Assembly: GCA_965603825.1 (NCBI GenBank)
Contig: CBFDEM010000044.1
Location: forward strand, 682,001 to 746,000
DNA length: 64,000 nt
Reading direction: 5' to 3'
Source: Blepharisma stoltei ATCC 30299
Lineage: Eukaryota > Protista > Ciliophora
The position numbers were made by a program, and so were the translations under genes. A model generated the notes under the pieces. That model saw nothing but the letters and a program-made list of their open reading frames with translations. It was not told where the DNA came from and ran no database searches. This document shows, in pieces, positions 6,857 to 63,657 of this stretch; position 1 is the first letter of the stretch; every line of letters begins with the position of its first letter.

Positions 6857-6951
6857 GATTAAGAAAAAATTATATATTCAAGATAATAAAGACCACTAAC
6901 ATTTTTATCATGATTTACTCTATGTAATATATAAGAATTAAATAATAATTT

Positions 6952-7779
6952 TTAAGCATCAAAAGCAGCGAGTTCAATATCTTCATTTGATTTTTCATTT
7001 TCCTTTGATTTTCCAGAATTTACAGTAAAAGTAAGCAAAAATCCTCTAAAAAATTGGCAAAAAATAGGTGGCACCATTATAGAAATTGACACTAAAATCC
7101 ATTCACAGATTGCCTCAGCATTTTCATTTATAAGGAGGTTTGATGGTATTGAATATGCCCAATTCCACTCGACAATATTAATAATCGAAATAAATACAAA
7201 AACTCCTAAAAATACAGACAAAATAAAAAACCAGTGTCTTTCTTGAGCATTGAATGTGCTTTTTGATAATAAAAGTAAAGAATAAACAAGGGAAGACCAA
7301 GCAAGATTTGAAATGATAAAGCAGGTTGATAAAAATACGTAAATAAATTCTAGAGGAAGAATGTGTACACTGTTTACCTCATCAACTAAACTAATTATAG
7401 GTAAAATTGAGCATGAAATAACTCCTAAGTATAATAATAAGTGCCTTTTTCACCTTGGTAAAGATGAACCGAAATGATAATAAGCTCCAGTGTACATTAA
7501 GATAAGGACTAGTGCAAAATATGTGCAAGATACGATAAAAACTCTGTCATGGCCTCTAAAGCAGCCTAAATAGCCCAAAGTCGGCAAAAATGTAAAGCAC
7601 GAGAAATTAGTTGCACAGGCTAGAATTAAATTTCCATAAACCATACCAATCATCAATCCTGAAAACCAAAACATAAGTTTAGGAACATTAATTGAGTATA
7701 TCGATCTTCCTTCTTTTTCTCTATAACTAAACACTGGGAGTGAAAAAGAATGCCTAAACTCTTTGTCGTTCCCTTCCAT
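6952..7779 (-). CDS. Multi-pass membrane protein, Frag1/DRAM/Sfk1 (PGAP2-like) family, 275 aa
   Basis: ORF-track pieces 7450-7779 and 6952-7221 join in frame through one TGA (7450-7452), with an open hydrophobic linker. About 6 TM segments. LPTLGYLG...RVF and AICEWILV resemble Frag1-family motifs; family call is by eye. Confidence 0.65.
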
Positions 7780-8266
7780 ATCTATTACTTAATTGAAAAA
7801 TGAACGACAGGTATAAAAGTCTTTTTACAATTACGAAATTTCTCCAAAATTATGAATAAATGTGGGAAAATGCTTAAAATACTCATTTTTTAGGCAAAAT
7901 TACTTTATTTGAGCTAAATTTGAATTATTTAAAGTACATAAATAGGAAATTTAGCAGGAGAAAATTCATAAATCATAAAAAACCCCAGATTTCTTTATTT
8001 ATTCTGGTTTAATAGCAAGCTATTTATTTTTCCAATAAATACCAAAACTGTAAACTAAATCTTATAAATTTTTATCAGTATTTTTATATTTGAAAAATCA
8101 ATTAAAAATGCTGCTATTTATTAATTATTTTTAAATCAAAAATATATAGAAATATGCCTAATAGTTTCATGATAAAAATTTAAAAATTAATCTAATCTTC
8201 CTTAAAATAATCTAATCATTTCTTATGGAATTCGTTAGGGGCAATCTTAATTCTAATAATAATAAA

Positions 8267-11200
8267 ATGCCGACCAATGCAGAACTTGGTGCGTGCTTTC
8301 TTTCGAGGACTCTTGACCTCGCTGCAAGGAAGCATTACAACTCATTTTTCAAAACAACAACATGATCCAATGAGCCTCCACCTATCCAGTCTCCGTCGCC
8401 AGTTCAATCGCCATTCCCTCTTCTATCTCCTTCACCTTTACAATCTCCCTCTCAAATTTCACTCCGCAGTGAGTCCAGCCATGACCTATTCCCCCGTCTC
8501 GACCTCAACCAAGTATCCCGTGCTTCTCATATTTCCCATGACTCTAGTTCTTCATCAAGAAGGCGATACACCAGGCTCGAGATGCTTCGCAAAGTCATTG
8601 ACAAGTTCATCCTCAGCATCAAAATCAACATGGATCAAGAAGCCTTATGGAGATGGCAATTCGTCAACCAAAAAATGAAAAAAATAGAACAGCTTAACGC
8701 CCTCCGTGAAATAATGAAAAAGAAAAAAGAACGAGACTTAGTAAGCTCCCTTCACAAACTCAAATGGCAAACCACAGAAGACCGGCTAATACCCCAAAGA
8801 GGAAGACTCACCCCAGCCGACAAAAGAGATGTGCTAATGAAAGTTGTGAGGAAAATGATAATAACAGGAAGGGTCAACCTAGAGCAACGAGGACTATGGA
8901 AATGGTACATAAAGGCTATTGATTTTTACCCATATGCCCCGCAGCCTTCGAATCTTCAATTGAATGCTACTGAAGCTTTGCATAGGACTATTATGAAGAA
9001 TATATGCAGAAGAGTTAACTATAGAGAATTCCAGGCTAAAAAAAGGTGCTTTAATTCGTGGAGAGACCCTGATGGACAAATTTTGGCACAAGTAGTAAGG
9101 AGAACTGCCACAAATCCAGGTGAGCTAAGAGCTAACAAAAAGCTGCTTGATAAAGAAAAATCAGAAAAACTAGTTAAAGGGCTAGAAAGACTTGGAAATC
9201 TCCGTCAAAATTTCGGCAAGCAGGTAATTTGGAAATGGTATCTTCACACTTTTCTCCAAAAAACACGCCAAGACTCTATTAAAAAGATTTTGCTTAAGCT
9301 AAAACTCCTCAGACTAGGGAAAAAAGAAAGTTTTTCTACATGGAGACTTTCCAGTATAAGCAAAACTGAAGAAATTTTTGAAGAAGAAAAAATAGTCTCA
9401 ACAAAGTCAAAACTAATTGGAAAACAAAAACAAGTCAAGGTCAGATCAGGCAGAAATCAAGGCCAAGAAGTCGCAGCCATAAACTTGTCAAATTTAATCA
9501 AAAAAAGAATTGCTTCTACAATGAACAATATGAGAATAGCTTCTGAAGCAAATGATAAAAGAAAAGCCATGATCAGAAAAACACTGCAGAACTTAGCCCT
9601 CATTGCAAAGCAGCATTTAAGAAAAGGCTTTGAGGAATGGAAACTTAACGCAAAAGAAAGAGAATTAGAAACCTCTAAAAGATCAGATAAAAACCAAATC
9701 ATGAAAAAAAGCTTGAAAAATCTAGCCCATATCGCCAAAGAAATGGTGCAAAAGAGATTTAATGATTGGAAACTTTATTATAAAGTGGAAACAAATGACG
9801 ATTTTTATGGGGAAAAAATCAAAGATAATAGAAAAATGACTGTAAAATCCAGCATAAGGAACCTTTCACATATAGCTAAAGAAAAAGTCCAAAGCGGGTT
9901 CAATATATGGAGAGCTCATAGAGACGAAGAAAATTCTTATAAAGAAAACGCTATCAAAAAAGCCCTGAAAAACCTATCACATGTAATCAAAAATACCCTT
10001 CAAAAGAGCTTCACTATGTGGGAAAATGCTGCAGGCATTGAAATCACTAAAAATAAAGAAAATTTGACACGAAAAAGTTTGCAGAATTTAGCCCACATTT
10101 TTAAGGAAGGGCTGCAGAATGACTTATTTAATTGGAAATTATTTGTGGCTATAAAAGCAAATAGAGCGTTATCAAAAACAAGGGTTGGAATGACTGTGAA
10201 ATCCTTTGGAGGGATCCAAAAAGTAGTAGTCCAGCCATACGAAGAATACGAAAATGACGAAATTTTTGTAAAAAGGTTCAGCTCAGTGGTAAGACCAGCA
10301 ATTTTGTTAGAAGAAACAGCCCAAAAGCGCCAAACCGCTTATAATCCTATCACGCGTGTACTGTCAGTTCCAGTATTTGACTATGAATATAAGCGCACTA
10401 TGAGAGCGGTTGACAATAAGCCACTGATATCTTTAGAAATTATTGATGAAAATAAAGAAATTTCAAGAAAAATCCTAAATCTGGAATGGGAGCAGAAAGT
10501 AATAAACAAGCTTAGAGTCGGGAAAAATTCGCCTTTGCATAGAGTTACCAGACCGATTTTGATGCCAGAAATAAAGCACTCAGTTAATACTCAAAGCTCT
10601 AGCTATAAATTACTATCAAAACCTAGCGTTCACATTGAAATGCTGAATTTCAATAAAATCAGGTCGAAATCTGCTATAAATAATCTTTCAGCATATGCTA
10701 GGCTCAGCTTGCAAAAATTATTTGATAACTGGAAACAAGCCACAGTTTTGGCATCAGATGAAACTTATAAGAAAATTTTAGCAGACAGATTTTCAGCTGA
10801 AACTGATAAATTCAATGAAGACTCTATGGGTAAATTAGTTAAGAAAATGGCCCAAATTTCTGATATAAGAAATAAATTTAGGCAAAATGCTTTATATAGG
10901 TGGCTGAAATTCGCAAATAAATATAAATACTCATCATTAGCTATCAAAACATTATCTTCAGCGACCTCTGAAAGAAACAGAACAACCCTCAAAAAAGCTT
11001 TTGAAAAGCTCATCCCTGAAGATACCACTTCTTTGAATTTGTCTAAAAAACTTCACCTAAATGTCCTCAATAAAATCGCTATGTTCAGCTTATTCAAAGC
11101 ATTTGGGATTTGGAAACAAAATATTGTAGAATTTGAAGAAATCGAAGAATTTGTGACGACTACTAAAGCCTCACAAGAAAGAAAGGTGTTTTTGCTTAGG

Positions 11201-14200
11201 TCTAAAGTATTTAGTGTCCCCTATTTAAATTTCGAAGAGCCTGTTATAGAAAGACAAAGGTTTAGAATTGTAAATAAACCGTTAATTCAGCCTGAAATCG
11301 TGGATTTCTTGAATACCTTTACGAAAGCATGCTTAGGGAATTTGAAGCATATGTCAAGAATTAAGACACGACAAGCTTTTAACACGTGGAAGGAGTCAAC
11401 TGACTTCGAAAATGACGAAATTTTATCAGCTGCCGTAAAAAGAAGATTCTTAAAAGGAAAGCCATCAAAGCCTAGAAGCCAAAAAATGGACACTATAGTC
11501 AATTACTTATTCAGGATGCATGAAACCAGAAGCCAGCTTCTTGGTAATGCTCTATTTAAATGGCTAGGCTACAGACTTGCAGGACTTTCTACCCAGACTA
11601 CCCACAATCTTCTATATAAACCTTTAACAATCCCTGAATTAGATTATTCATTTGACCTAAAAGCTATAAAATATTCAGGAATTTTAATGAAAAAGCCTAG
11701 AGTTATGATTGAAGAAATGGACGAATTCAAGAGAAATTCCCATTTATTAGCTGGAAAGCCAAAAGACAATGGAAAAATGAGCTTAATTGTGGAGAAACTC
11801 TATAAAATTGCAAAATCAAAAGAACATGCAAGTGAATTAGCATTATTTAAATGGTTTAGTCATGATATAGATGAGAAATGTGAGAAATTATATTATAAAA
11901 TATTTACTAAGCCTTTGACTATAGCAGAAATTGAAAGTTCTTATGAGAAATATAGTGAAAAAGTGTTAGCAAAACCAATTGCAATGATTGAGGAAATAAA
12001 AGAGCTGACTCAAGACCAAAAAGAAATTATGAAAAAGAGTGTAGTCAAATTGGCAAGAATTTTCAGAGGGAATCTGCAAAAGGTTATTAATAGATGGAAA
12101 ATTAACCATCATAAGAAAACTACTGCTATTGCAAAAAGAAAGACAAAGGCAGTTAAAGTTAGATCAGCGCCAAGAAATAGGCCAGCGTTTGAAATTTTAA
12201 ATAAGCCTACAACTCAGCTTGAATTTATTGATCACTCAAAGACAATCAAAGATTTGCTTACAAACTTAACCCACGCAGTTAAATACAATTTACTCAGATC
12301 TCTCAATTCTTGGAAGAATAATGCACAGCTAATATCAGCAACAAAAACTGAAGCTCAAGTCACATTCAGTGTAATGCAAAAGGTATCAATTGCTCCAGAA
12401 ATCAAATACGAAGAAAATGCAGCAAAGAAAATGCATTTAAGAGTCTTAAGCAAAATCGTCATGTTTGGACTGCATAAAGCATTTGATACTTGGAAACAAA
12501 ATTTAGTAAAATATGAAGAAGTCGCAGAAATACAAATCTTTATTCCTATTAGCAAGCTTATAGTGATTCCAGAAATCCAATCAGCCCCAACTCTTATTTC
12601 CTTAGAAATACAAAAGACTTCTATACTCGCCCTGCCAAGAGTTCTTCCAGAGCTTTCAACAGAGCAACAAATACACGATATGGAGAATAAATATAGACAA
12701 AAAGTCCAAATCACCTCACTATCAGCAATTCTTCCTCCACTTGTTGCACCTGAAATTTCTATTGAGCATAAAGCAGATAAAGTCCAATATTTCTCTTTGT
12801 CGAAAAAATCTATTGTGTACCCATTCTATCAAGACGAAACTACAAAGAAAATAGGAGCCATTGCAAGGCATTTTTCAGCAGTCTCACAAAAGAGAGAAGA
12901 GTTTGCGAAACTTGCTCTATTTAAATGGTTCTCAAATACTAGAGATAGTGATATCAAGAGGACTTCTAGAACTATTTTCTCTGCATTTGCCAAACCTTTG
13001 TCGATGATGCAGTGCTTGATTGATGCAAAAGTTATTAGATACTCTGAAATAGTTATGAGAAAGCCAAGAATGATGATTGAAGAAACTGATATAGTCAAGA
13101 AAAATTCGCATTTATTATCTGAAAAGCCTAAAGACGACCAAAAAATGCAAATGGCTGTTGAAAAGTTATACAGAATAGCCCAACTCAGAAAAATATTGAC
13201 TGAAGTTGCAATCTTTAGATGGATTAGTCGTGGAATTACTGAGGAGGTAAAAAAGTTAGATTATAAATTATTCACAAAGCCATTAACAACAGTTGAGTTT
13301 GAGAATTCTATTGAAGAGCACAGATATGCAGCCAAAGTTGTAGCCAAACCAATTGTGATTATAGAAGAAGTCGAAGAATTGACTCAAAGCCAAAAAGAAA
13401 TCATGAAAAAATCAATTTATAATTTAGCTAGAATTTTCAGAGGAAATCTTCAAAAAGTTATTAATAGATGGAAAATAAACCATCATAAGAAAAATACAGC
13501 AATTGCTAAGAGAAAGACAAAGGCAGTTAAAGTCAGATCAGCTCCAAGAAATAGGCCAGTATTCGAAATTTTAAATAAGCCTACAACTCAGCTTGAGTTT
13601 GTGGACCACTCAAAGAATATCAAAGATTTGCTTACAAACTTAACCCACGCAGTTAAATACAATTTACTCAAATCTCTTAATTCTTGGAAAAATACTGCAA
13701 GACTAATATCAGCAACAAAAACTGAAGCTCAAGTCTCATTCAGTGTAATGCAAAAGGTATCAATTGCCCCTGAAATCAAATACGAAGAAAATGCAGCAAA
13801 GAAGATGTGCATAAGAGCATTAAGCAGAATTGGAATGCTTGGACTAAATAAAGCCTTTGAAACTTGGAATCAATATTTAGTTCAATATGAAAAAGCTAAT
13901 AAGGAAACTCAGATCTTTACTCCTGCAAATAAACTTATTATTACTCCAGAAATTCTATCAGTCCCAACTCTTGTTTCCTTAGAAATACAAAAGACTTCTA
14001 TACTCACCCTGCCAAGAGTTCTGCCTGAAATTATCGTTGAGCCTAAAATACAGCATATCCAGCATTTCTCTTTGTCTAAGAAATCTATTGTTTTCCCACT
14101 TTATCAAGATCAAACTGTAAAGAAAATAGGCAGCATTGCCAAGTATCTATCAATAGCAGCTCAAAAGAGAGATGAATTTACCAAAACTGCTCTCTTTAAA

Positions 14201-17200
14201 TGGTTTACAAAAATTCATGATAACGATGTAAAAGACACTTCTAGGTCTATATTTTCAATATTTGGGAAACCTATAGTCATGATTCAATACTCGCTTGACG
14301 CTAAAACGGCGATATCTTCAGAAACTATAATAAGAAAGCCAAGGATAATGATAGAAGAAACTGATATAGTCAAGAAAAATTCGCATTTATTATCTGAAAA
14401 GCCTAAAGACGACCAAAAAATGCAAATGGCTGTTGAAAAGTTATACAGAATAGCCCAACTCAGAAAAATATTGACTGAAGTTGCAATCTTTAAATGGATT
14501 AGTCGTGGAATTACTGAGGAGGTTAAAAAGTTAGATTATAAATTATTCACAAAGCCTTTAATCACAGTTGAGTTTGAGAATTCTATTGAAGAGCATAGAT
14601 ATGCAGCCAAAGTTGTAGCCAAACCAATTGTGATTATAGAAGAAGTCGAAGAATTGACTCAAAGCCAAAAAGAAATCATGAAAAAATCAATTTATAATTT
14701 AGCTAGAATTTTCAGAGGAAATCTTCAAAAAGTTATTAATAGATGGAAAATAAACCATCATAAGAAAAATACAGCAATTGCTAAGAGAAAGACAAAGGCA
14801 GTTAAAGTCAGATCAGCTCCAAGAAATAGGCCAGTATTCGAAATTTTAAATAAGCCTATAACTCAGCTTGAATTTGTTGACCACTCAAAGAATATCAAAG
14901 ATTTACATGCAAACTTAACCCACGCAGTTAAATACAATTTACTCAGATCTTTCAATTCTTGGAAAAATACTGCAAGACTAATATCAGCAACAAAATCTGA
15001 AGCTCAAGTCTCATTCAGTGTAATGCAAAAGATATCAATTGCCCCTGAAATCAAATATGAAGAAAATGCAGCAAAGAAGATGTGCATAAGAGCATTAAGC
15101 AGAATTGGAATGCTTGGACTAAATAAAGCCTTTGAAACTTGGAAGCAATATTTGGTTCAATATGAAAAAGCTAATACAGAAACCCATATATTTACTCCTG
15201 CAAATAAACTTATTATGACTCCAGAAATTCTATCAGTCCCAACTCTTATTTCCTTAGAAATACAAAAGACTTCTATACTCACCCTGCCAAGAGTTCTGCC
15301 TGAAATTATCGTTGAGCCTAAAATACAGCATATCCAGCATTTCTCTTTGTCTAAGAAATCTATTGTTTTCCCACTTTATCAAGATCAAACTGTAAAGAAA
15401 ATAGGCAGCATTGCCAAGTATCTATCAATAGCAGCTCAAAAGAGAGATGAATTTACCAAAACTGCTCTCTTTAAATGGTTTACAAAAATTCATGATAACG
15501 ATGTAAAAGACACTTCTAGGTCTATATTTTCAATATTTGGGAAACCTATAGTCATGATTCAATACTCGCTTGACGCTAAAACGGCGATATCTTCAGAAAC
15601 TATAATAAGAAAGCCAAGGATAATGATTGAAGAAACTGATATAGTCAAGAAAAATTCGCATTTATTATCTGAAAAGCCTAAAGACGACCAAAAAATGCAA
15701 ATGGCTGTTGAAAAGTTATACAGAATAGCCCAACTCAGAAAAATATTGACTGAAGTTGCAATCTTTAAATGGATTAGTCGTGGAATTACTGAGGAGGTTA
15801 AAAAGTTAGATTATAAATTATTCACAAAGCCTTTAACCACAGTTGAGTTTGAGAATTCTATTGAAGAGCACAGATATGCAGCTAAAGTTGTAGCCAAACC
15901 AATTGTGATTGTAGAAGAAGTCGAAGAATTGACTCAAAGCCAAAAAGAAATCATGAAGAAAACTATATGCAATTTGGCAAGAATTTTCAGAGGAAATCTC
16001 CAAAAAGTTATCAATAGATGGAAAATAAACCATTATAAGAAAAATACTGCGATTGCTAAGAGGAAGACAAAAGCTATTAAAGTCAGATCAGCTCCAAGAA
16101 ATAGGCCAATATTCGAAATTTTAAATAAGCCTACAACTCAGCTTGAATTTATTGACCACTCAAAGAATATCAAAGATTTGCTTACAAACTTAACCCACGC
16201 AGTTAAATACAATTTGCTCAAATCTCTCAATACTTGGAAAAATGCAGCGCGACTCGCCAAAGCCGAGACTGAAATACAAATCTTTATTCCTATTAGCAAG
16301 CTTATAGTGATTCCAGAAATCCAATCAACCCCAACTCTTATTTCCTTAGAAATACAAAAGACTTCTATACTCGCCCTGCCAAGAGTTCTTCCAGAGCTTT
16401 CAACAGAGCAACAAATACACGATATGGAGAATAAATATAGACAAAAAGTCCAAATCACCTCACTATCAGCAATTCTTCCTCCACTTGTTGCACCTGAAAT
16501 TTCTATTGAGTATAAAGCAAATAAAGTCCAATATTTCTCTTTGTCGAAAAAATCTATTGTGTACCCATTCTATCAAGACGAAACTACAAAGAAAATAGGA
16601 GCCATTGCAAGGCATTTTTCAGCAGTCTCACAAAAGAGAGAAGAGTTTGCGAAACTTGCTCTATTTAAATGGTTCTCAAATACTAGAGATAGTGATATTA
16701 AAGGAGTTTCTAGATCTATTTTCACAACGATTATTAAACCTTTGTCTATTATTCAGTGTTTGATTGATGAAAAACCTATTAGATACTCAGAAGCATTGAT
16801 CAAAAAGCCAAGGATTGTTATTGAAGAAATGGATATCGTAAAGAAAAATTCGCATTTATTATCTGAAAAGCCAAAAGATGATCAAAAAATGCAAATGGCT
16901 GTAGATAAGCTATTTAGCATTGCAAAAGCAAGAAAACTGATGAGTGAAGTTGCAATATTTAAATGGATTAGTTGCGAAGTTTCTGAAAATAAAGAAAAAT
17001 TGTATTATTGTCTCCTAACAAAACCAATAACTACGATAGAAAAAGAATCCTCTGTAAATTCATCTATAAATATAATTTTGTCAAAGCCAATTGTAATAAT
17101 TGAGGAAATAGAAGAATTAAATGACAGCCAAAAAGAAATGATGAAGAAAACTATTTTGAACTTAGCCAGAATTTTCAGAGGCAATCTCCAAAAAGTTATA

Positions 17201-20200
17201 AATAAATGGAAAGTTAATCATCATAAGAAAAATACTGTAATTGCTAAGAGAAAGACAAAAGCTGTCAAAGTAAGATCAGCACCTAGGAATCGACCTGTAT
17301 TTACTGTATTAAGTAAACCAACAACTCAGCTTGAACTTATAGACCACTCAAAGACGATCAAAGATCTCCTTGTAAACATAACACACGCAGTCAAATATAA
17401 CCTACTCAAATCTCTTAACTCGTGGAAAACGGCTGTGCAGCTAATAAAAGCAACAAAATCTGAAGCTAAAAAATCATTCAGCATTACTCAAAAGCTTTCA
17501 ATTGCTCCAGAAATAATTTTCGAAGAGGCAAATCCCCAAGTCAAAGTCTTTTTCCCTGCCAAAAAACTTATTGTGACTCCACAAATCGAATCAATCCCTA
17601 TCCTTATCTCATTAGAAATTCAAAAATCTTCCGTCTTAATTGCACCAAGAGTTTTGCCAGATTTCCTAACAGAACAAAAAATCCATGATATGGAAAATAA
17701 GCATAAGCAATCAGTCCAAGTAGTCTCGTTATCAGCAGTTCTTCCTCCTGTTGTTGTGCCTGAAATCCTATTAGAACCAGAAATCCAGCATTTTTCATTA
17801 TCTAAGAAATCGATTGTGTTCCCACTCTATCAGGATGAAGCTATAAAGAAACTCGGTAGCCTCGCAAGACATCTTTCATTAATCTCACAAAAAAGAGAAG
17901 AGTTTGCAAAACTGGCTCTATTTAAATGGTTCTCAAGTATCCGTAGCAATGACATAAAAGGAACTTCCCGGTCTATTTTCTCAGTATCTTCAAAGCCTTT
18001 GTGTATAATTCAGCAAGCTACAGAGCCATCTTTAGTAAGCTTACTACCAACTCTAACGAACTTAAGCCATATTGCAAAATTCAGCTTATTTAAAGCATTT
18101 TCTTCATGGAAAAACTCAGAACCACTTAAGCCAGAAACTAAATTATCATTTACAATTCTATCAAAACTCTCAGTTATTCCTGAAATAGTATTTGAAGACA
18201 ATAAATCCTACCAAAAACTGCATTTGAACGTCCTCAATAAAATCGCTAAATTAAGCTTGTTTAAAGCATTTGAGATCTGGAGACAAAGTATGGTAGAATT
18301 TGAAGAAATCGAAGAAATTGTGTCAACAACTAAAGCTTCACAAGAAAGAAAAGTATTTTTGCCTAAAGCCAAGGTCTTTGTTGTGCCTTGCTTAGATTTC
18401 GAGGCTTCGGTTATGATTAAAACATCACAGGCTATGAGCAAGCCAATAAGCCAGCCAGAGGTTGTAGATTTCTTAAGTAATTTCACGAAAGCTTGTTTAG
18501 GGAACTTGAAGCATGTGTCGAACATAAAATTAAGACAAGCCTTTAATAAGTGGAAAAATGAGACTGACTTAGAAAGTGATGAGTTTCTGTCTGCGGCTGC
18601 GAAAAAATGGGCATTAAAAGGAAAACCATCAGAGCCACAAAGCAAAGAAATGGAGACTATAGTTCATTTCTTAAATCAGACACAAGAAACTAGAAGCCAG
18701 CTACCTGAGCGTGCTCTATTTAAATGGATTGGCTATAAGCTTGCAGGTCTATCTGATCAGTTTACTTATAAATTGCAATATAAGCCTTTGGTCGCCTTAG
18801 AAATCGATTATGAATTTGAAAAGAAAATTAAAAAATATTCAGAAATTAGAAAGCCTTTAATAATGATAGAAGAAACTGACATAATCAAGAAAAATTCACA
18901 ATTTTTGTCTGGAAAGCCAAGGTTTGATAATGAAAAAATGAGCATGGCTGTTGAAAAATTATTCAAAATAGCTCAGCTTAGAAAAATTTTTACTGAAGTT
19001 GCAATCTTTAAGTGGATTAATAGAGGGGTTACTGAAAAAGCCATTAGGCAGGATTATAAATTGTTCACAAAGCCTTTAACAGCTATTTATATTGAGAACT
19101 CAGTTGAGGAATTTAGACATTCAGAAAAAGTTTTAGCAAAGCCTATTGTAATTATTGAAGAAATCGAAGAATTGACTCAAAGCCAGAAAGAAATGATGAA
19201 GAAAACTATTTTGAACTTAGCCAGAATTTTCAGAGGCAATCTCCAAAAAGTTATAAATAGATGGAAAATTAATCACCACAAGAAAAATACGGCAATTGCT
19301 AAGAGAAAGACAAAGGCAGTTAAAGTCAGATCAGCTCCAAGAAATAGGCCAGTATTCGAAATTTTAAATAAGCCTACAACTCAACTTGAATTTATTGACC
19401 ACTCAAAGAATATCAAAGATTTGCTTACAAACTTAAACCATGCAGTTAAATACAATTTACTCAGATCTCTTAATTCTTGGAAGAATACTGCACAGCTAAT
19501 ATCAGCAACAAAAACTGAAGCTCAAGTCTCATTCAGTGTAATGCAAAAGATATCAATTGCCCCAGAAATCAAATACGAAGAAAATGTAGCAAAGAAGATG
19601 TGCATAAGAGCTTTAAACAAACTTGTTTTGCTTGGACTAAATAAAGCACTTGATACTTGGAAACAAAATTTAGCTAAAAATGAAGAATTAGCTGCAGAAA
19701 TCAAAATATTTACACTTGCTAGCAAGCTTATAATGATTCCAGAAATCCAATCAGTCCCAACTCTTATTTCCTTGGAAATACAAAAGTCTTCAGCCCTTAG
19801 ACCACAAATAGTTTTGCCAGAGTTTTTGACAGAGCAACAAATCTATAGCATAGGAAATAGACATAAGCAAAGAGATCAAACTATATCATTGTCCGTACTT
19901 CTTCCTCCAGTTTTATCTCCTGAGATTCTCGTTGAACATAAAATGCAGGATTTTCAATATTTCTCCTTGTCTAACAAATCTATTGTGTTCCCATTCTATC
20001 AAGAAGAGACCACAAAGAAACTAGGAGCCATTGCAAGGCATCTTTCTGCAGTCTCACAAAAGAGAGAAGAGTTTGCGAAACTTGCTCTATTTAAATGGTT
20101 CTCAAATACTCATGAAAGCGATATTAAAGGGGTTTCTAGAACTATTTTCACTGCACTTATTAAACCTTTATCGATTATTCAGTGTGTATTTGACATAAAG

Positions 20201-35200: not shown

Positions 35201-38200
35201 GAATTTTTACTACCTCAAGCATTAATAGAAGCTGTGCAAAAATACTCTCCTCTATCAAAGCCTCAAATTTTGATTGAAAAGCATGATGAAGATGAAATAA
35301 GAAGATTGGCAATAAAGAAATTCAGCAGCTCTAAAAGTCAAACAATTGGCCAAGAAGTAGCTTTTGCAAGTACTTCTAGACCTGTTGTGCCTATTGAAAT
35401 CCTTAGCAAAGAAAAGATAAGAAGACATCTCAAAGAAATTGTTATTTATAGTGATGCAGCTCAATCTCAAGAATCCTCAATTGTTTATTCTGCTATTTCA
35501 AGACCACAAATCGCGATTGAAAAACTATATGAAGAAGTCACCAGAAGGCGCAAGGTTAAGAAGGTTTACATTGATTATGCAGAAAGCAGCCAAGTCACAG
35601 AAATTATTCTTGAGTCAAAACCTATCACTATTATTGAGCAGCATTCTTATATTAAAGGAAAAGAGTCTTTTGAAAATATTCTGAGTCCTTCAGCTGAGAT
35701 AGAAAGTAAGCCTGCAGAAAATCCTATCAATTTGCCTAAGGTTTCTAAAGACAGCCTTAGTCAATCAGAAAGTGTTCATATTTTATCTGCAGTTTTAAGA
35801 CCTCAAATTCCAATAGAAACTTTGTATAAAGTACCTAGGAGAAAATATGGAAGCGAAAAAATAATTTCCCCAATGGACACTTATGAATCCTCCACCTTAT
35901 CAGTACTATCTCGGCCTAGAATTCCTGTTGAGACTTTATCAGCGTCTTCTCAGAAAAAACAAAGAAGTCTTGAACTAAGCCTTTCTACACAAATAGAAAG
36001 CCAGGAAAGTTTCTCAATTTCATCATTTAAGCCTCAAATACCATTTGGAGAGATTATCAAAGCGAAATTAGGAAATCTTGAAGCAATTATTAAAGTTAAA
36101 CTTATGAAAGCGTTTGCGACTTGGAAAGAAAAAGTTGTGTTCAATAGAGACTCACTACAAGAGTATTTAGTAAGGGAGCTTTCTAGCGAAAAAGACTGGC
36201 CGGTAAATGAAAAAATGGACAAACTTGTGAAGTTTTTGATGGAAATTTCTCATAAGAGAGGTAAGCTGCTGGAAGTTGCATTATTTGAATGGCTGGAAAA
36301 GACTAAATTAAATAGTTCAGATCCTGAATCTTTTAGACTATCTTCAACTGGTAGTCCAATTGTTAACAGTCCTATCATTCAAGAATTGCTAGAGAGCGAA
36401 GAAAATAAGGACAAAAACGCCAAAATGTTTAAATTAGTCGAATTTTTAGTAGGGATTACTAAGAGAAGGGAAAAGTTTTCGCAGATCGCCCTGTTTGAAT
36501 GGATGGAAAAAGCCCACTTGATGGATGAACATCTTGAAGCTAGAAAAGCTGACTTAGAAAAGCAGTTTTCTTTGGAAAAAGTAATAGAAAAGATTATGCA
36601 AAATGAAGGAGAGGACAGGCCAGACAGTAAGATGAGCAAAGTTATGAATTTCTTAGTGCACTTCCAACAAAAGAGGGAAAACCAAAGTAAGCTTGCGTTA
36701 TTTGAGTGGATGGAAAAAGTCAACTTGAAATATGAAAGAATCCCTGAAAGAGACGAAGAAACACCTATTCAATACTCAGTCATTTCAAGACCTCAAATCC
36801 TACTTGAAACAATAACAGAAGCATCAAATCGTCATTCATGGCAGTTTGAATATGAATTTTCAAGCTTGCATAAGATTGTCACTTTGCCATGCCTCTATGA
36901 AGAAAAATCATCAGAAAGATTTATTAAGTCTCCTGCTATTCAGCTTTCTACCCTTACAAAACCAAAGGTCCCTGCAGAAATAATTATAGAGAAACTTCAA
37001 TATCAGCCTATGCCTTCATTTTCAATTCTCCAAAAACCAATCACTCTTCCTCACCACGAAAAATCTTCAGCCATTTCCCAGCTTTCCCTAAATGCCCAAG
37101 AAGCTGCGATTGAAGCTCCTATGCTTCATCTCAGCCGCCTAGTATTTTCTGCATCCCACAAAGCTATAAATCTTCCATATCTCGAGACTGAAAAATCTTC
37201 AGAGTTCATCTCTTTATCATTTACTATCGAAAGAAAGCCAACAGTTCAGCCTGAATGCTACAGCTTCTTTGGAGAAACCGAAAACTACATAAGATTGAAG
37301 CTCAGAAATCTTGGATCAATTTGCAGATACAATGTAATGAGAGCATTTTTGCTTTGGAAACAAAATGATGCGTTAAATAGCAGCGGAAACTTCAAAGAAA
37401 CTTTGGTAAGGAAACTCACAAGTGAAAAAGAAAAGCCAGACGAGAAAATGGATAAAGTTGTAGACGCATTTGGATCTATTAGTAAGAAGAGAGAAAAATT
37501 CGCTGAATTGGCATTGTTTAAGTGGTTAGAGAGCTCTAAAGATATAGACTTGAAGCCTGAAAAAGAGCCAGAATTCTTCTTTGGAGAAAGCAGTATCAGC
37601 ATTCAAGACTCCCAGGGTAATCACTTTGAAGCTTTCAGAAAGGTTTGTGTTCCATTAGAGACCTACGATGAAAAATCTCACAGAAAAATTGTTTTCCCAT
37701 ACTTATCGTCTCAGCAATATTCAGTAGTATCAAGACCACAAATCCCTATTGATGTCATTTCCAAAGCTAAAAGAGCTAAATCTGCTGCAATTGAGGGCTC
37801 ATTTAAAGCTTACTCAGCTATATCCAAACCTCAAGTATTGCTTGAATCAATAGTCCAAGCCTCATACCTTAATTACCTGACAGTCTCCAAGCCTCTTACT
37901 ATTATTTATATATATGACGAGGCTAAGAAATCAGATGGCTGGGAAGACATTTCGACTCCAAAACCATCACAAAGGATCACTAAGCAGGCCAGGTCAACTC
38001 TTAAGTCAAGAAAGCCGCTTAGCAAGGCTCAAAGCTTGCCAGTCAGTGATATACCACCATTTTATTCTCCAATCACCAAACCAATTACTAGCATTGAAAT
38101 TTGTGAAGAGCCTCATGAACCAGCTTGGGAAGATTTGAATACTAAAAAGCCTACCCAAAAAATAACAAAGAGACCTAGAGCTGCCCTTAAGTCAAGAAAG

Positions 38201-41200
38201 CCAATGAAAAACATTTCAGAGTTCCATATATCTGATAGACCAGTTATTCCTATAGAAGAGCATGCTATACCGACTGCAGAACAATTGGCTAGAATGTCAG
38301 AAAAAGTTAAGGATGCATTGAGATGTTTAGCACATATATCAAAAGATAGCCTGAGCAAGGCATTCTATAGGTGGAGATATGTATATTCTGAGCAGAAAGA
38401 ATCAGAAAAGGCAATAGAGTATAGCATTTCGACTAAGCTGAAACCCTTGATACTTCTTGAAACTTTATCATCTAAGCAGCATCATCAGAAAGATAAAAAA
38501 TTAACGTCAAGTGATACTAAGACTGTTAAACTTTCTCCATTTGAGAAGCCAAGAGTAGAAATTGCAACAGAAAAAGTTGAGTACGTTATTTTACCACAGC
38601 CGAAACGTACGATATCTGCAGTAAAACCACAATTAAGCTCTTCTACCTTAGAACTATCAATTATTAAAAAACCTCTTATCTCTATTTCTAATATTTCCAG
38701 ATGCGAATTCCAGCCTGAAAACAAGCTTTTGACCGATATAGAAGTTAGCGAAGAATACCAAGTCATATTGCCACGGCCTAGCATCAGAAGAGCTTTAATA
38801 AAACGGCGAAAGCACGCACCTTTCAAGAAGCCAAGATTCCACTCAATCAGTGAAGTTGAATTCCAGCCACAAAGCAAACAGCTTCAAGACATTTTTACCG
38901 CTGAGGCAGAAATCGAAACTTATGAAGCACCACAACTGCAGGAGTCTGAAGCTCCTGAAGAGCCTCTTGAAGAAATTTCTATTCCTATAGCAATTTTTGA
39001 GCAGCCGTTATACTCTGAGATAGAGCCTTCTATTGCTGAAAATACAGTGCAGGTATACACAGTAGTTTCAAAACCAAGAGTTGTTTTAGAAAAGAGAGTT
39101 ATAAGTGTTGATGAAGGGCAATCTTCTAACTTAGAACAAATTATCAAGCCAAAATTAGGAAATCTAGAAGCAATTATCAAGGTTAGGCTTATGAAAACAT
39201 TTGCCACTTGGAAAGAAAAATCAGCTTTTAATCCAGAATCACTACAAGAGTACATCACCAGAGAGTTTTCCAGTGAAAAAGAATGGCCAGTGGACGAAAA
39301 AATGGACAAAATTGTGGAACACCTCACAGAAATTTCCCGTAAAAAAGACAAATTTGTAGAAATCGCTATGTTCGAATGGCTTGAAAAAGCGAAATTCAAC
39401 AGTTCAGATCCTGAGTCCTTAAGACTTTCTTCAGTAGGCAGTCCTATAGCCAAAGTAATTTCCTCAGAAACTGACTCTCCACGCCTATCCACTTTTGGCA
39501 GTCCTGTAATCCATGAACTACTCGAAAATGAAGAAAATAAAGACAAAAATGCAAAAATGTTCAAGCTTATTGAATGTTTAGTAGGAATCACCAAGAAAAG
39601 GGAAAAATTCGGGCAGATGACGCTATTTGAATGGATAGAAAAATCAAATCTATTGGACGAAAATCAAGCTGAGCTTGCAAAGAAGTTTTCTATGGAAGAA
39701 GTAATTGATAAAATCATTCAAAATGAAGGAGAGGATAAGCCAGACAGCAAAATGAGCAAAATTCTTAGATTTTTAGTAGAATCCCAGAGAAAGAAAGAAA
39801 ACCACAGCAAACTTGCCTTGTTTGAATGGATGGAAAAGGTCAACTTGAAGTTTGAGAGATTCCCTGAAGGAATGCAGATCCAGTATTCAGCAATTTCAAG
39901 ACCACAAATTTTGCTTGAAACCATAACTGAAGCGCAAAAGTCACAGACTTGGCAATATAAAGGTGAATTTTCTGCTGCCCAAAAGATAGTCACTTTCCCA
40001 TATCTTGATACTGAAAAGTCTTCTCAAATTATTTCTCAGTCATTCACCATTTATAGAAAGCTTGCTGTCCAGCCAGAGTGTTACAGCTTCTTAGGGGAAA
40101 CTGAAAATTACATTAAACTGAAGCTCAGAAACCTTGGATCTATTTGTAGGTATAATTTGATGAGAGCATTTTTGCTTTGGAAACAAAATGATGCACTAAA
40201 TAGCAGTATAGTCCTGAAGGAAACTTTAGTAAGGAAGCTCACAAGTGAAAAGGAAAAGCCAACTGACGTGAAAATGGATAAAGTTGTTGAGACTTTAAGC
40301 GATATTAGTAAAAAGAGAGGAAAATTCGCGGAATTAGCATTGTTTAAGTGGATTGAAAACTCAAAGGATTTAGACTGGAAGCCTGAAAAAGAGCCTGAGT
40401 TTTATTACCAATCTGGTGATACCAGTATGAATATCACAATTCAGGACTCGAAAGTCCATGAATACAGCTTTAGCATATGTAGAAGAATTTGTGTACCACT
40501 TGAAGTCCATGATACAGCATCCCATAGAAGACTTTTAGGTTCGTTAGAAAATGAGTCCATGCAGTATGCAGCGGTAACTAGACCTCAGATTCTCGTTGAA
40601 GTTATCTCTTCAGAGAAAAAAGCTAAGATTGTCTTATCAGAGCAGCCGAGTTTATATGCAGCTTATTCATTTATAACAAAGCCACTCATACTATTGGAAT
40701 CATTGCTAGAAAAATCAGACGATAAAGAAAAGCCTATAATAATCCCCAAATCTCAAATTCCTCTTGAAGTGGCTTCTGAAGCAAAACTTGACTCATCAGA
40801 ACAGCCGAGCCTGTATGCAGCTTATTCATTTATAACAAAACCACTCATACTATTGGAATCAGTATCAGAAAAATCATACGATAAAGAACAGCCTATGATA
40901 ATCTCTGAACCTCAAATTCCTCTTGAAGCTGCTTCTGAAGCAAAACTTGACTCATCAGAAAATCCAAGCTTATTTGCAGCTTATTCATTTATTATAAGAC
41001 CTCTCATACTATTAGAATCATTATCAGAAAAATCAGACGATAAAGAAAAGCCTATGATAGTCTCCGGACCTCAAATTCCTATTGAAATGGTTTCTAAAGC
41101 AAAACTTGATTCATCTGAAAATCAAATCTTATATTCAGCTTATTCATTTATAACCAAACCACTCATACTATTGGAATCATTGCTAGAAAAATCAGATAAC

Positions 41201-44200
41201 AAAGAAAAGCCTATGATAATCTCTGGACCTCAAATTCCTATTGAAGTGGCTTTTGATGAAAAACTTGTGGCCCCAGGAAATCTCAGCTCTTTTGAAATAT
41301 ACTCATTTATCATAAGACCTATCATACTATTGGAATCACTATCAGAAAAATCAGACGATAAAGAAAAGCCTATGATCATCTCTATACCTCAAATTCCTCT
41401 TGAAGCGGATTCTGTAGCAAAACTTGATTCATCCGTAAATCAAAGCTTATATGCAGCTTATTCGTTTATCACAAGACCTCTCATACTATTGGAATCATTA
41501 TCAGAAAAATCAGATGACAAAGAAAAGCCTATGGAAATCTCAGGACCTCAGATTCCTCTTGAAGTAGTTTCTGAACAAAAACTTTTGGCCCCAGAAAATC
41601 TCAGCTCTTTTGAAGTGCACTCATTTATTATAAGGCCTCTCATATTATTGGAATCATTGTCAGAAAAATCAGGTGATAAAAAACAGCCTATGATAATCGC
41701 CAAATCTCAAATTCCTCTTGAAGTGGCTTCTGAAGCAAAACTTGACTCATCAGAACAGCCAATCCTATATGCAGCTTATTCATTTATAACAAAACCACTC
41801 ATACTATTGGAATCAGTATCAGAAAAATCATACGATAAAGAACAGCCTATGATAATCTCTGAAGCAAAACTTGATTCATCCGAAAATCCAAGCTTATATG
41901 CAGCTTATTCGTTTATCACAAGACCTCTCATACTATTGGAATCATTGTCAGAAAAATCACACGATAAAGAAAAGCCTATAATAATCTCCAGGTCTCAAAT
42001 TCCTCTCGAAATGGCTTCTGCTGAGAAACTTTTGGCCCCAGAAAATCTCAGCTCTTTTGAAGTGCACTCATTTATCATAAGACCTCTCATACTATTGGAA
42101 TCATTGTCAGAAAAATCAGACGATAAAGAAAAGCAGATAATAACTTCCAGACCTCAAATTCCTCAAGATGTGGCTTCTGATGAGAAACTTGTGGCCCCAG
42201 AAAATCTCAGCTCTTTTGAAGTATACTCATTTATTTCAAAACCACACATAATGCTAGAGTCATCATCAGAAAAATCAGAAGATAAGGAAGAGACTATAAT
42301 AATCTCTGGACCTCAAATTCCTTTTGAAGTGGCTTCTTATGAGAAACTTGTGACCCCAGAAAATCCAAGCTTATATGCAGCTTATTCATTTATCACAAGA
42401 CCTCTCATACTATTAGAATCATTGTCAGAAAAATCAGAAGAAAAAGAAAAGCCTATAATAATCTCTAGACCTCAGACTTCTCTTGATATCGCTCTCGAAG
42501 GGAAACTTATTGCGTCAGAAAGTCTCAGCTCATTTGAAGTTTATTCATTTATCTCAAAGCCACTCATACTATTAGAATCATTGTCCTCAAGGTCAATCGA
42601 CTTAGAAAAGTCTGCACAGTATTCAGCAATAGCAAGGCCTCAAGTTTCTCTTGAAGTGATATCTAAAGAAAAAAGAGCCAAATCTGCCTTATTAGAAAAA
42701 TATAATGACATTATTCTTAGTTCAGAACAGCGTTCATATATGGCATTAGCAAAACCTATAATCATGTTTAGTCAGATACACGAACGAAAAGTCCAATCCC
42801 AGGTTATGACAGTTTTAGCAGCGGCAAAAGTGATCATTCCTCTTGAATTATTGTCAGAAAAAACAGAAAGCTTAGATAAGAAAGTATATTTGCCTATAAG
42901 CAGACCTTTAACTATTGTGGATATGTTTAGCGAAGACTGGGAAGATATCACTCCCACTCAAAAATCTTTAGTAATCACCAAGAAAAAAGGTCCTGCACTT
43001 AAATCTAGAAAGCCAGTGACTAAGAATCTCCAATCGTTCTCTCTTCTGAAAAAGCCACTTGCGTTTATAGAAGAGCTTGAAATTTCTGAAAAAGTAAAAG
43101 ATTCGCTAAGGCATTTGAATCATATTCTCAAAGATAGGATTAGCAAAGCCTTTTATATATGGAAGCACAATGGATCTTCTGAAGAATTCATAGAAGAAGT
43201 CACTACAGTCACTTGGTCTATTGAAAGGAATGACCCTGCTTTCAAAGAATCAGCCCTAGCTAGACTTGCATTTGTGATTAATCAGACTGATGCCAAATTG
43301 CTTGGCTTTGCATTTGAAAAATTGAAATATATCAGCCAAACTGCCAAAGCTCCTGAATTTGTGTATACTGAATTGCCTAGCTATAGAGTACTTACTATAG
43401 TTGAAACTTATGACAAGCATAGGAGAGCCAATATTAAAGCTGAAGACGATCTTATAGAGCTAGGATCTGTTTCCTCATTAGAGGAAGCTGTGGAAGAAAG
43501 ACAAGTATATGAAGTCCTTACCAAACCTAATAGCTTCCCAATTTGCATATTTGAACAGATTCCTATCAAAGTAGAAATGACCGTAGACAGCGAATATATA
43601 GTTTCCAGCATCTTTAAGCCCCTCATAATGCCTGAAATTCTATCTCCAAAAGCCCACCAAGTGTCAGACACCCTCATCCCTGGTGAAACCAGAACTATAC
43701 AATTTGTCCCATTCGAAAAGCCCCGACCAAGAATTACCGAAGAAAAAGTCGAAATTGTGATTCTCCCTCTTCCTAGAGTTGATAGAGAATTAAGAAAGAG
43801 CAACACCCCTCTTGATACATCTAAAGATGAGTCATCATTTGAAAAACCTGAAGCTTCTAACGAAATCAGAGTCCTAACTAAGCCATTATCCCCATTAGCC
43901 AAAGTAACCCGCTTGTTCTTTGAAATTTCAGACAAAATGACTGTTCCAATTGAAGAAGATGAGGAATACAAAGTTGTCCTGCCGAAATCTATTATTAGGC
44001 GACCATTGGTTAAGCGAAGAAAATATGCCCCAGTAAGCAAGCCAAGATTTGAAACCAGCTCACAGGTTACTATTCAGCCTGCACAAAAAGTGATCCAAGA
44101 TATTCTCATTGTAGAAGGAGCAGACACCCAAGAAGTCGGATACGTCACTGAAGACACTCATAGAACTTTGCAGCTGGAAATTAAGCCAGAGGTCACTGAA

Positions 44201-46006
44201 ATGGAGTTTACTTTTGAATTTAAAGAAGAAGTCCCTGAAGTAGTTGATGAATATTCAATTGAACAAAAAGCAGAATCTTCAGTCCTGGTAGTTGAAAGGT
44301 TCGAGGCTGAAAATAAGCCAGAAGTGTTTGGAGCTGTATATGAAGAAGAAGTCAATGTGTATTTATTAGACCAAAAAGTGGTTTCATCATTGGTAAATGT
44401 AGAGAAATATCACTATGAATTAGAAACTAAGCCAGAGGTGCTTGAAGCTGTCTATAGACAAGAGATCAGTGAATATCTGCTAGAACAAAGACCTACTTCA
44501 TCATTATTGCTTATTGAGAATTATCATTACCAAATAAAACCTCAGCCATTTATAACTTGTATTGAGCAAGCCATTGCTATAGAATACTCATTAGAGCATA
44601 AAGCTGATACTTCATTGTTATTAATTGAGCAATTTAAGTCTGTTCATTCCCTCCCAAGAATTCAGCCAGTCTCAAAGTCCTTTACTTCTTATTTGCCAAT
44701 ACAAATCGAGCGAAAAGTGGTCATAGACATTGAAGAAGATGAGGATTATTCTTTGCAATCCACTACAAAGCAGCTGGTAAAGCACACCAAATATGTACCA
44801 TTCGGCAAGCCAAGAGTAAAATCAAGCTCAAACCTTGAAATCCTTCCAGTCAGAAAAATCGTTTCTGATATATTGGCAGTAGAAAAGCCATCTGATATCA
44901 TTACTAAAGATAGTGCAAAAGAGCTGCAAGAAAGTGTCCTAGCTAATCCAGAGCCAACCGAGCTAGCAGTCACATTTGAGTTTAAGCCAGAAGTTGCTGA
45001 CCTCCCTAATGAATATTATCCTTCTGAAAAGCCAGCTCCTTCCATGCTTGCAGTCCAAGAATTCGGTCCTCCGTATTCTCTCGCTACAGTTTACCCTTAC
45101 AATGCAGAAAAATCAGAATACAGTCAAATCCGTAAAAATCCTTCTTCAATGCTATTAGTTGAAGACTTTGGCCATGAGCTGAATTTACCTGTTACTGATC
45201 CAATATATGACCAAGATTTACTAGAAAGCCAAGAAGAGTTAGTTTATAAAGAAATAGACATAAGCAGCCTCCTTAGCAAGCCACTTGTAAAAGATTTAAG
45301 TTCTTTGCTAGACTCCCCCGAAATCCAGTCAACAGAAAGAATTACTAAATCATTGGAGCCAGAAGAAGAATTCAAACAAGTCACAGGACGATCACAAGCA
45401 GAGTCACTTGGAATTGAAACCCATAGACCAGCGTCTACTTCTCGAAGAAGAGTCCACAAAGTTCGCCGTATCTATACTAAGAAATTAAGATACTACCCAC
45501 TTCAAAAAGGCATCAAAGCTCTTGCCCAAAGCAAGATCGTCAAGCCAATGCAAGAAGCCTTTGACCTCCTCAAATATCTGCTTTATACTTCGACAACCCC
45601 ATCTCAGCAGAAAATAGAACAGGCTCCTAATATTGAAGATTTCACCCCACGAGCCATCACAATTCAAAGGTTTGCCAGAGGATTTTTAGCAAGAAAACGG
45701 TTTGCAACTATGAAAGAAGTCCAAAAGGTCAGAATTGTCGAGCCAAGAAAAAGCAGCAGCTCTATGAAAATCAGACTGTCTAAATTTACCTTGAAATCGA
45801 GGCTTCTTACCCTTAAAAAAGTCGTACATAAGGTCCTGCTGAAGTCTAAAAAAGAATGCTTTTTGAGAATGAAAAGAAGAGACGCCAGCGCAAGACGAAG
45901 AAACTTTTATAAAATCCAAAAAGGAACCAAGGCTATTGTAGGAATCTGCTCCCAAAGGTACGCTGAAGCATTTGAGAACCTCAAGAAAAATTTATTAACG
46001 AAATAA
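8267..46006 (+). CDS. Giant (~12,579 aa) Sfi1-like repeat protein; putative centrin/spasmin-binding cytoskeletal scaffold with C-terminal IQ motif
   Basis: The 12,474-aa ORF from 8582 extends upstream in frame through one TGA(Trp) at 8363-8365 to an ATG at 8267 (AATAATAAAATG context; another in-frame ATG at 8225). About 90 motifs of type L-x2-L-x6-7-L-x2-A-F-x2-W-[KR] or A[LI]F[KE]W resemble the Sfi1 consensus A-x7-LL-x3-[FL]-x2-W-[KR]. IQ motif at 45650-45703. Confidence 0.85.
11640..24240 (+). repeat. Nine intragenic super-repeats (~1.2-2.0 kb each) marked by LARIFRGNLQKVIN[RK]WK[IV]NH[HY]KK...KVRSAPRNRP
   Basis: The marker occurs 9 times (near 12058, 13434, 14709, 15984, 17172, 19225, 20604, 22240, 23458). 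A near-identical 1275-bp tandem spans about 13060-16240 (gaaaagccta at 13121, 14396, 15671). Confidence 0.92.
24860..29000 (+). repeat. Intragenic modules KVRSAK..HL[KN]NLDHI.K....AF..W[KR], including an almost exact ~310-bp duplication (24868 / 26633)
   Basis: Repeated peptides visible in the translation. QQKVLVPAVVVNDVEV...CLETKCVVPI occurs twice identically. Confidence 0.85.
29960..34830 (+). repeat. Nested intragenic duplications in the Trp-poor spacer: 1434-bp tandem pair (31391-34180) plus related copies at ~29960-31300 and ~34220-34830
   Basis: aatatttttg at 31391 and 32825. Identical antisense shadow ORFs at 32014 and 33448 are 1434 bp apart. EEIPEE[VE]FGAVSFQIEEKSTKLQSEVPENKKPS occurs three times. 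Confidence 0.9.
36050..44100 (+). repeat. Two diverged copies of a C-terminal super-module (~36050-39130 and ~39140-44100)
   Basis: KLGNLEAIIKV.LMK.FATWKEK, three LFEW helices, KLRNLGSICRYN.MRAFLLWKQNDALN, WEDI, EKVKD.LR.L.HI.KD..SKAFY.W, PFEKPR and KRRK.AP..KPRF each occur twice in the same order. Confidence 0.85.
40640..42600 (+). repeat. Tandem array of 13 x 159-bp (53-aa) units, one unit 30 bp shorter
   Basis: Unit YAAYSFITKPLILLESLSEKSDDKEKPMIISxPQIPLEVASEAKLDSSEQPSL. gcttattcat at 40661 and 40820 gives period 159; the last unit is anchored at 42539. Confidence 0.95.
45650..45703 (+). other. IQ calmodulin/EF-hand-binding motif in the giant protein
   Basis: RAITIQRFARGFLARKRF matches IQxxxRGxxxR exactly. 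Confidence 0.85.
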
Positions 46007-46023: not shown

Positions 46024-46602
46024 ATGGATGGAACTGCAAAATTAATTTTTGTCCTGGGTGGTCCAGGTGCTGGCAAAGGTACCCAGTGCTTACGAATTAT
46101 TGCTGATTACCCTAATTTTGTCCATTTATCAGCTGGAGACTTGTTAAGAAAAGAAAGGATGAGTGGGAGTGCTAATGGAGAACTTATACAAAAATGTATT
46201 GATGAAGGGTCAATTGTCCCTGCTGAAATCACTGTTGCATTAATAAGACAAGCTATGAGAGAGGCTGGGTGGACCACAAAACGGTTTTTGGTTGACGGGT
46301 TCCCAAGAAATGACGATAACTATTTGACTTGGTTCAGGCTTTCTCCAGATGTAGATGTGGAATATTGCTTGTTTTTGGACTGCGACCCTGACAAGATGGT
46401 GGAGAGAATTGGCATGAGAGGAGGAACGAGGAGTGATGATAACCCTGACGTCGTCAAAAAGAGACTGGTCACTTATAATGAACAAACAAGGCCAATTATT
46501 GAAAGGTTTGAAGTTCAAGGAAAGCTGCTGAGGGTTGATGTGAATGGGACACAAGATGAGGCATATCAGAACACTATTAGAGGTTTAGGATTAATAAGCT
46601 AA
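46024..46602 (+). CDS. CMPK1: UMP-CMP kinase (adenylate kinase family), 192 aa
   Basis: IFVLGGPGAGKGTQC P-loop, HLSAGDLLR, FLVDGFPRN and RSDDN. Confidence 0.93.
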   Translation: MDGTAKLIFVLGGPGAGKGTQCLRIIADYPNFVHLSAGDLLRKERMSGSANGELIQKCIDEGSIVPAEITVALIRQAMREAGWTTKRFLVDGFPRNDDNYLTWFRLSPDVDVEYCLFLDCDPDKMVERIGMRGGTRSDDNPDVVKKRLVTYNEQTRPIIERFEVQGKLLRVDVNGTQDEAYQNTIRGLGLIS

Positions 46603-46769
46603 GCCAGATCTCCATCAAAAAGTTAAAATTGCGAACGATGATTCTATAAATTATTATAAAAAATTAAAAACTTGCTTAATAAAATAATTCTTTTCTATAA
46701 AATAAATTTTAATAAATCCCAACTTAAAATCTTAAGTATTTGGCAAGCAAATTTAAAAATAATATACTA

Positions 46770-63629: not shown

Positions 63630-63657
63630 TATAAATAATAAATTTTATAATAAATCA

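Follow-up and report, generated by a model that had tools for sequence, protein, structure and literature searches.

A 64,000 nt stretch of the Blepharisma stoltei ATCC 30299 somatic genome (contig CBFDEM010000044.1, positions 682,001–746,000; hereafter, the window) contains a single frame of 37,740 nt, at 8267–46006 on the forward strand, and this raises the question of whether such a frame is one gene and what its product might do. Translated with table 4 (UGA = Trp), it specifies a protein of 12,579 amino acids (aa), with a mass of 1.446 MDa and an isoelectric point (pI) of 9.4. The gene is real, and the best explanation for its product is a giant, largely unfolded scaffold, encoded without introns and belonging to a heterotrich family that is related to, but separate from, the giant spasmin-binding protein (GSBP) and Stentor Sfi1 backbones of myonemes. 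An earlier note on this DNA had described a single frame of this length with about 90 [FLI]xxW motifs, which agrees with the 91 counted here, and the two motifs it quoted are present at W949 and W5689. The titin-scale size that it offered as novel has precedents in Spirostomum GSBP1 and GSBP2 (13,125 and 17,974 aa), which carry a Trp every 69 aa within a KGA[LVM]...PKDA...W[RK] motif (PMC9946354).

The published somatic genome of this strain was assembled from HiFi reads and has a UGA = Trp code and introns of 15–16 nt; the assembly searched here is 41.46 Mb in 64 contigs. The giant frame has only one in-frame TGA (8363–8365, +; codon 33, Trp33) among its 110 Trp codons, and from 8366 it is also open in the standard code. 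In the paralogues described below, TGA codons occur at conserved Trp positions. The ATG at 8267 is supported as the start codon because the first 21 residues (8267–8329, +) are identical in a syntenic homologue (L038) from another ciliate with UGA = Trp. This homologue is 37% identical to the window protein across 795 columns, its upstream neighbour gene is common to both loci, and its contig stops after 1,560 aa. The read check was confined to the first ~6 kb of the gene (5.9 kb tested). Four runs from a strain or species related to this one, whose RNA origin is flagged as no more than probable, gave contigs over about 8279–12200 and over part of what remained of that stretch. No 15 or 16 nt joints were found in these contigs over 8279–12200, their depth upstream of the gene was zero within the region tested, and 32 of the 40 differences listed were synonymous. 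Ratios of nonsynonymous to synonymous substitution (dN/dS) between the internal repeats, which are at most 97% identical in nucleotide sequence, were 0.15–0.48, and the gene is under purifying selection. Intron-like strings are few, every one of them out of frame or within coding motifs, and no introns were detected in the open reading frame (ORF) 8267–46006. In two of the runs (X3 and X4) the contigs carry about 70 unrelated letters joined before window position 8283; the join may be chimeric, or the gene of that strain may have another 5′ end.

Ninety-one of the 110 Trp residues are found in [FLI]xxW, where composition predicts 25, and two classes of W helix were distinguished. Class A (n = 65) has the consensus K-x-x-[LI]-x-N-L-x-H-I-x-K-x-x-L-x-K-A-F-N-x-W-K, while class B (n = 27) terminates in A-[LI]-F-[KE]-W. 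The reversed triad L8-xxx-[FL]4-xx-W1, which is the documented orientation of Sfi1-type sites (PMC8622359), occurs 41 times against 1.3 expected by chance (59 times if any hydrophobic residue is allowed at position 8), while triads in the forward direction are fewer than expected (2 against 10). The W windows are Pro-poor with a net charge of +3.2, and the linkers between them are neutral and Pro-rich. In an AlphaFold model of a 425-aa unit, helices standing alone coincide with the W motifs and the sequence between them has no fold, at low confidence (predicted local distance difference test, pLDDT, 35). The spacing of sites is irregular, with a median of 83 aa. Only one of the 90 intervals falls at 23–36 aa, in keeping with the earlier description of the sites as non-contiguous, unlike those of canonical Sfi1.

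A pattern search of the genome located a second giant gene, on contig C3 (G000:C3:425,042–451,606, +; L065–L068). It is intronless and encodes 8,841 aa (1.01 MDa) with regular 69-aa repeats of the form KGAL...P[RK]DA..KW[KR], including 59 intervals of exactly 69 aa, and the ends of the protein match Stentor Sfi1-1 by eye. These repeats, which stand in here for those of GSBP, were compared with the class-A helix. A position-specific scoring matrix built from them, with the Trp column excluded, put class-A windows at the 99th percentile, in register only, and hhalign aligned the two at 89% (E 2.4e-6). Class A and the published GSBP consensus have in common K-21, L-18, R-17, L-15, A-4, the W and the following K. 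There is also weak sharing of a head motif, detected in the C3 protein at E 2e-4 by a hidden Markov model (HMM) built without it (best decoy, 6e-3). On the other side, KGA[LVM] is absent from the window protein, as is Pro at −7 (70% of class-A helices have L there), and the 69-aa Trp period is not kept, just 13 of 90 intervals being 66–72 aa. Judged by its sequence, the window protein is a distant GSBP-type relative with a different repeat, not an orthologue. The suggestion that it is a repurposed myoneme homologue becomes unlikely because the counterpart of GSBP and Stentor Sfi1 is this other gene, on C3. The accompanying premise, that Blepharisma is without such a contractile system, is weakened by the presence of a 1.0-MDa GSBP-type gene and by one preprint that lists Blepharisma among the myoneme-contractile heterotrichs.

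The best reading of the W helices is a putative Sfi1-like EF-hand scaffold, favoured because they carry the reversed triad and align in the register of the GSBP repeat; the filament backbone proposed in the earlier note is upheld to that extent. A number of observations weigh against it. The window locus, the whole protein and single repeats gave no match to Pfam Sfi1 (PF08457), the full consensus A-x7-LL-x3-[FL]-xx-W-[KR] has no match in the protein, a PDB sequence search with the repeat cluster and a class-A profile returned nothing, and the ESM Atlas gave weak hypothetical matches only, with no family. A hydrophobic position 8 is absent from most class-B helices, basic amphipathic W helices are also capable of binding calmodulin, and the AlphaFold predictions, here and for the second motif below, are of low confidence. 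The hhalign match joins two W-anchored amphipathic helices, and the class-A and GSBP-type HMMs did not cross-match at 8 bits or more. The Pfam negative is softened by the C3 protein, which likewise misses Pfam Sfi1. The claim that the pattern is the established Sfi1 repeat is, as worded, unsupported: it fails for the Pfam model, the full consensus and the PDB, and what agrees is the triad orientation and the GSBP register. Matches to Pfam Sfi1 do occur elsewhere in the genome, at G000:C52:55,757–56,005 (−, 29.7 bits) and C57:235,529–235,921 (+, 21.3 bits; cut-off 22), and are candidate canonical Sfi1 genes.

The linkers had been described as punctuated by Pro. They are indeed Pro-rich, but are built of a second repeated motif that was missed, and this, the KP motif, is the most distinctive feature of the giant protein. 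Iterative profiling found about 227 copies of [YF]-S-x-[IL]-[ST]-K-P-x-[IV]-x-[ILP]-E (1–8 in shuffled sequences), at a median distance of 41 aa. The shorter strings [KR]PxxxxE/D and [RK]Px[IV]x[IVL]E occur 137 and 57 times, against 13 and 0.2 by chance. Trained on one zone, a profile recovers the motif from the remaining zones as well as from L038 and P0003; it stays below threshold in P0004, P0005 and P0011, and never found the motif in the C3 protein. The short homologues have recognisable copies of a looser form. Overlap with W helices is limited to 2 of 128, and aa 6900–9260 and a 53-aa tandem array (aa 10790–11450) are filled by the KP motif alone. Four of the 53-aa units gave no fold in AlphaFold (pLDDT 30). 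The motif has no Pfam or Atlas family match, and the Pfam repeat models of alveolin, epiplasmin and articulin did not match up to E 10. Readings of the motif as SxIP, RVxF or LC8 TQT were rejected by inspection. Loose matches to the calcineurin site PxIxIT number 100 against 42 by chance, such matches being mostly non-binders according to the literature; the companion site LxVP is not enriched in the window protein, and the apparent likeness of the KP motif to PxIxIT is a lead only.

Three short paralogues of about 680–750 aa, one on contig C23 and two on C27, contain the same elements: the head motif, 3–4 W helices (of class A) and 1–3 KP-like motifs (L034:4862–7114, +; L036:5393–7432, +; L070:1441–3495, −). 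An NCBI B. stoltei protein matches one paralogue at 100% identity. The head motif, G-x-[VIT]-x-x-EQ-x-[GA]-[LF]-W-[RK]-W, was located in the giant by profile search at 8807–8905 (+), with a weaker copy at about 8567–8656, and is common to the three paralogues and five outside homologues. Homologues from outside numbered five among 1.84 billion representatives, with one more in metagenomes. Apart from L038 and L043 they come from gene-dense eukaryotic contigs read in the standard code, and the outside homologues are probably from heterotrichs. Word-based searches with 10,000-aa and 800-aa queries gave no matches, and an alignment-based search yielded nothing beyond a paralogue from B. stoltei, one protein of the input and an MMETSP fragment. 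None of the homologue searches turned up a named Stentor protein. The two-motif architecture, its family and its coexistence with a GSBP-type giant are undescribed in the literature searched. Size and Sfi1-likeness are precedented (see above). Since short paralogues of 530–990 aa carry the same elements, a partner of the KP motif could be found with small constructs.

Could the length be an artefact, produced by mis-assembly of repeats or by joining several genes or hidden in-frame introns? Repeats that are 97% identical, read support drawn from the first 6 kb and an L038 contig that ends early would allow it, but 37.7 kb without UAA or UAG in a genome of 66% AT, a HiFi assembly, repeats at least 3% divergent with dN/dS well below 1, and the validation of similar intronless giants in Spirostomum leave such an artefact very improbable. 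That the protein is the Blepharisma myoneme backbone itself, a degenerate or repurposed GSBP orthologue contracting by the same kinking mechanism, is also quite improbable. Its size is GSBP1-like, its repeat can be aligned with that of GSBP and the head is in common; it nevertheless lacks KGA[LVM], Pro at −7 and the 69-aa spacing, and it is in the separate 8,841-aa protein that the 69-aa repeat occurs, together with two ends that match, by eye, those of Stentor Sfi1-1.

The other two alternatives accept the motifs and change the partner. In one, the ligand of the W helices is calmodulin or some EF-hand protein other than centrin, giving a scaffold for Ca2+ signalling or buffering in which the KP motif may dock calcineurin. 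The C-terminal tail has an IQ calmodulin-binding motif (45653–45703, +; Pfam PF00612, 22.3 bits against a cut-off of 20.3, one copy), the W helices are basic and amphipathic, both PxIxIT-like strings are enriched as given above, and an Arg at position 2 favours calcineurin binding (PMC6728138). Against this, the triads have the Sfi1 orientation and the GSBP register, loose PxIxIT matches seldom bind, position 6 is E and not T, many copies are in another register and there is no excess of LxVP, so this scaffold is unlikely. We give no greater weight to a structural fibre without an EF-hand partner, in which helix packs against helix or attaches to microtubules (postciliary ribbons), with self-assembly of the KP motif in the manner of alveolin, epiplasmin or articulin. 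The protein is basic (pI 9.4) with repeats rich in K, E, I, V and P, and its VPVEKI-type strings are reminiscent of alveolin repeats. However, neither the alveolin model (IMCp) nor any other Pfam model for such a fibre matched even at E 10, the invariant exposed Trp triad is a docking signature for EF-hands, and AlphaFold shows no packing of helix on helix.

The reading we favour, an Sfi1-like scaffold for EF-hand proteins, is rather probable in the following form, argued from the motifs and their spacing: a centrin-coated, beads-on-string filament of the cortex that has flexible spacers as well as places for a second partner to dock, and that provides elastic or slow Ca2+-dependent tension. 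Every W helix would bind one centrin or spasmin-type EF-hand protein through L8-xxx-F4-xx-W1. Sites that are irregular and a median of 83 aa apart preclude both the unbroken head-to-tail sheath that centrins build on yeast Sfi1 and the regular 69-aa superhelix of GSBP. Ca2+-driven contacts between centrins, which have been reported for the Spirostomum complex, might instead loop out or cross-link the flexible spacers, yielding an elastic or slowly contracting network. The KP motif would act as a multivalent dock, either for itself or for another abundant partner, and the zones free of W helices may serve as extensible springs or anchor segments. Taking about 2,400 residues as helix and 10,200 as spacer, the stretched contour comes to about 4 micrometres. 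The likeliest site would be the cell cortex, where the filament could hold shape, or resist and reverse elongation, beside the separate GSBP-type protein; titles of published papers refer to Ca2+-dependent cell elongation in Blepharisma. A bolder version, which we regard as doubtful, is a titin-like ciliate filament, a single chain of about 4 micrometres with about 90 Ca2+-sensing centrin beads, long entropic springs and about 225 docking sites for a second partner, possibly calcineurin. It would constitute a Ca2+-tuned elastic system not described before, acting apart from the 69-aa myoneme backbone to fix cell length or bring it back.

Fibres of centrin and Sfi1 are the main ATP-independent motor of ciliates, with giant backbones that, where known, are 69-aa arrays, regular and helical almost throughout. 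In the window protein the same lineage has a second design, one of sparse sites and flexible spacers filled with motifs. It is a natural case for comparing how the spacing of sites sets speed and stiffness, and is a candidate for the elastic element missing from models of contraction. The C3 giant exceeds every reported Stentor homologue (1,000–4,600 aa) in length, and thereby puts to the test an explanation of ultrafast contraction by the length of the backbone.

Both giants avoid UGA. It accounts for 36% of Trp codons genome-wide (44,087 against 78,535) and 32% in 41 neighbouring ORFs, but for 1 of 110 in the window giant and 1 of about 120 in the C3 gene. The scarcity persists after repeat collapse (p ~3e-7 and ~5e-7) and at ordinary GC content of third codon positions. 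It fits the competition between eRF1 and tRNA at UGA that has been proposed in the literature, and selection against premature termination at leaky UGA codons is possible; in the L038 fragment, 5 of 18 Trp codons are UGA, which weakens a strict requirement. These near-UGA-free giants offer a test of leaky UGA decoding.

The remaining parts of the giant are arranged as follows (all +, from sequence). Five class-A W helices, 37–47 aa apart, form a dense cluster at 9554–10186. Shuffled super-repeats of 400–550 aa, composed of class-A helices, class-B helices (ALFKW type) and KP motifs in copies that are 70–97% identical, occupy 10904–24166, and are followed at 24164–28966 by variant class-A helices (NLDHI type) with KP-motif spacers. 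A spacer of about 2,360 aa without a W helix extends over 28964–36046, with KP motifs about 40 aa apart and a 478-aa tandem duplication inside. Two related modules, in which class-A and class-B helices are combined with KP motifs, lie at 36044–40426, and the array of about 12 tandem 53-aa units, with KP motifs and without W helices, at 40634–42616. The final class-A helix (W11632, 43094–43165) precedes an acidic, non-repetitive region rich in Pro, Glu and Val (43214–45466) and the basic C-terminal tail (45464–46003). In Pfam scans of the whole protein and of single repeats the IQ motif of this tail was the sole credible match; scores for RepB_C and Pex16 were mere sums over repeats and were rejected.

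An adenylate/UMP-CMP kinase gene (46024–46596, +) starts 17 nt past the stop codon, so the 3′ untranslated region of the giant must be tiny or overlap the kinase gene. Housekeeping genes follow at 46728–63644 (PP2C, CoA transferase, THOC2, aldo-keto reductase, protein kinase and a UBA-UCH deubiquitinase). Upstream lies the gene for a multi-pass membrane protein (6955–7788, −). Its counterpart in L038, at 60% identity, likewise precedes the homologue, with an inositol polyphosphate kinase gene between the two. Further left are three tandem paralogous genes (1–1086, 2803–4194 and 5897–7049, −) with 77–85% DNA identity, one having weak Kelch matches, and interleaved with them is a duplicated block (2303–3209 and 4931–5873).

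Among known systems, yeast and human Sfi1 (PF08457; Kilmartin 2003) resemble the window protein in their many reversed L8-xxx-[FL]4-xx-W1 triads, often followed by K or R. Unlike them, it has no A-x7-LL prefix, its sites are non-contiguous and Pfam does not recognise it, whereas the C52 locus passes PF08457. Paramecium PtCenBP1, compared by description, is a large Sfi1-like backbone of a Ca2+-responsive cortical mesh, the infraciliary lattice, but is about 3,800 aa and largely helical. For the KP motif, the calcineurin site PxIxIT and the repeats of alveolin, epiplasmin and articulin likewise have Pro and then alternating aliphatic residues, in a probably disordered context; the KP motif ends in E, is preceded by [YF]SxI[ST]K, reaches about 225 copies per chain and has no Pfam match, and the likeness is a resemblance only.

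The closest parallels are in heterotrichs. Stentor coeruleus Sfi1-1, Sfi1-2 and Sfi1-3 (10.1101/2025.08.11.669701) are cortical centrin scaffolds from the same ciliate class, with ALFKW-like motifs, seen by eye, in their non-repeat ends. They are 434–527 kDa with regular 69-aa repeats, and their Blepharisma counterpart is the C3 gene, not the window gene. GSBP1 and GSBP2 of Spirostomum minus (Zhang et al. 2023, PMC9946354) and the 69-aa Sfi1 of S. ambiguum (Lannan et al., 10.1101/2024.11.07.622534) are, like the window protein, intronless heterotrich giants, of 1.4–2.0 MDa, with many helices ending in W[KR], and the class-A helix aligns in register with the Spirostomum consensus. The Spirostomum proteins have 184–267 regular sites, whereas the window protein has about 90 irregular ones, without the 69-aa period, the KGAL start or the Pro of the repeat; about 80% of it is non-helical spacer carrying a second motif, and it ends in an IQ tail.

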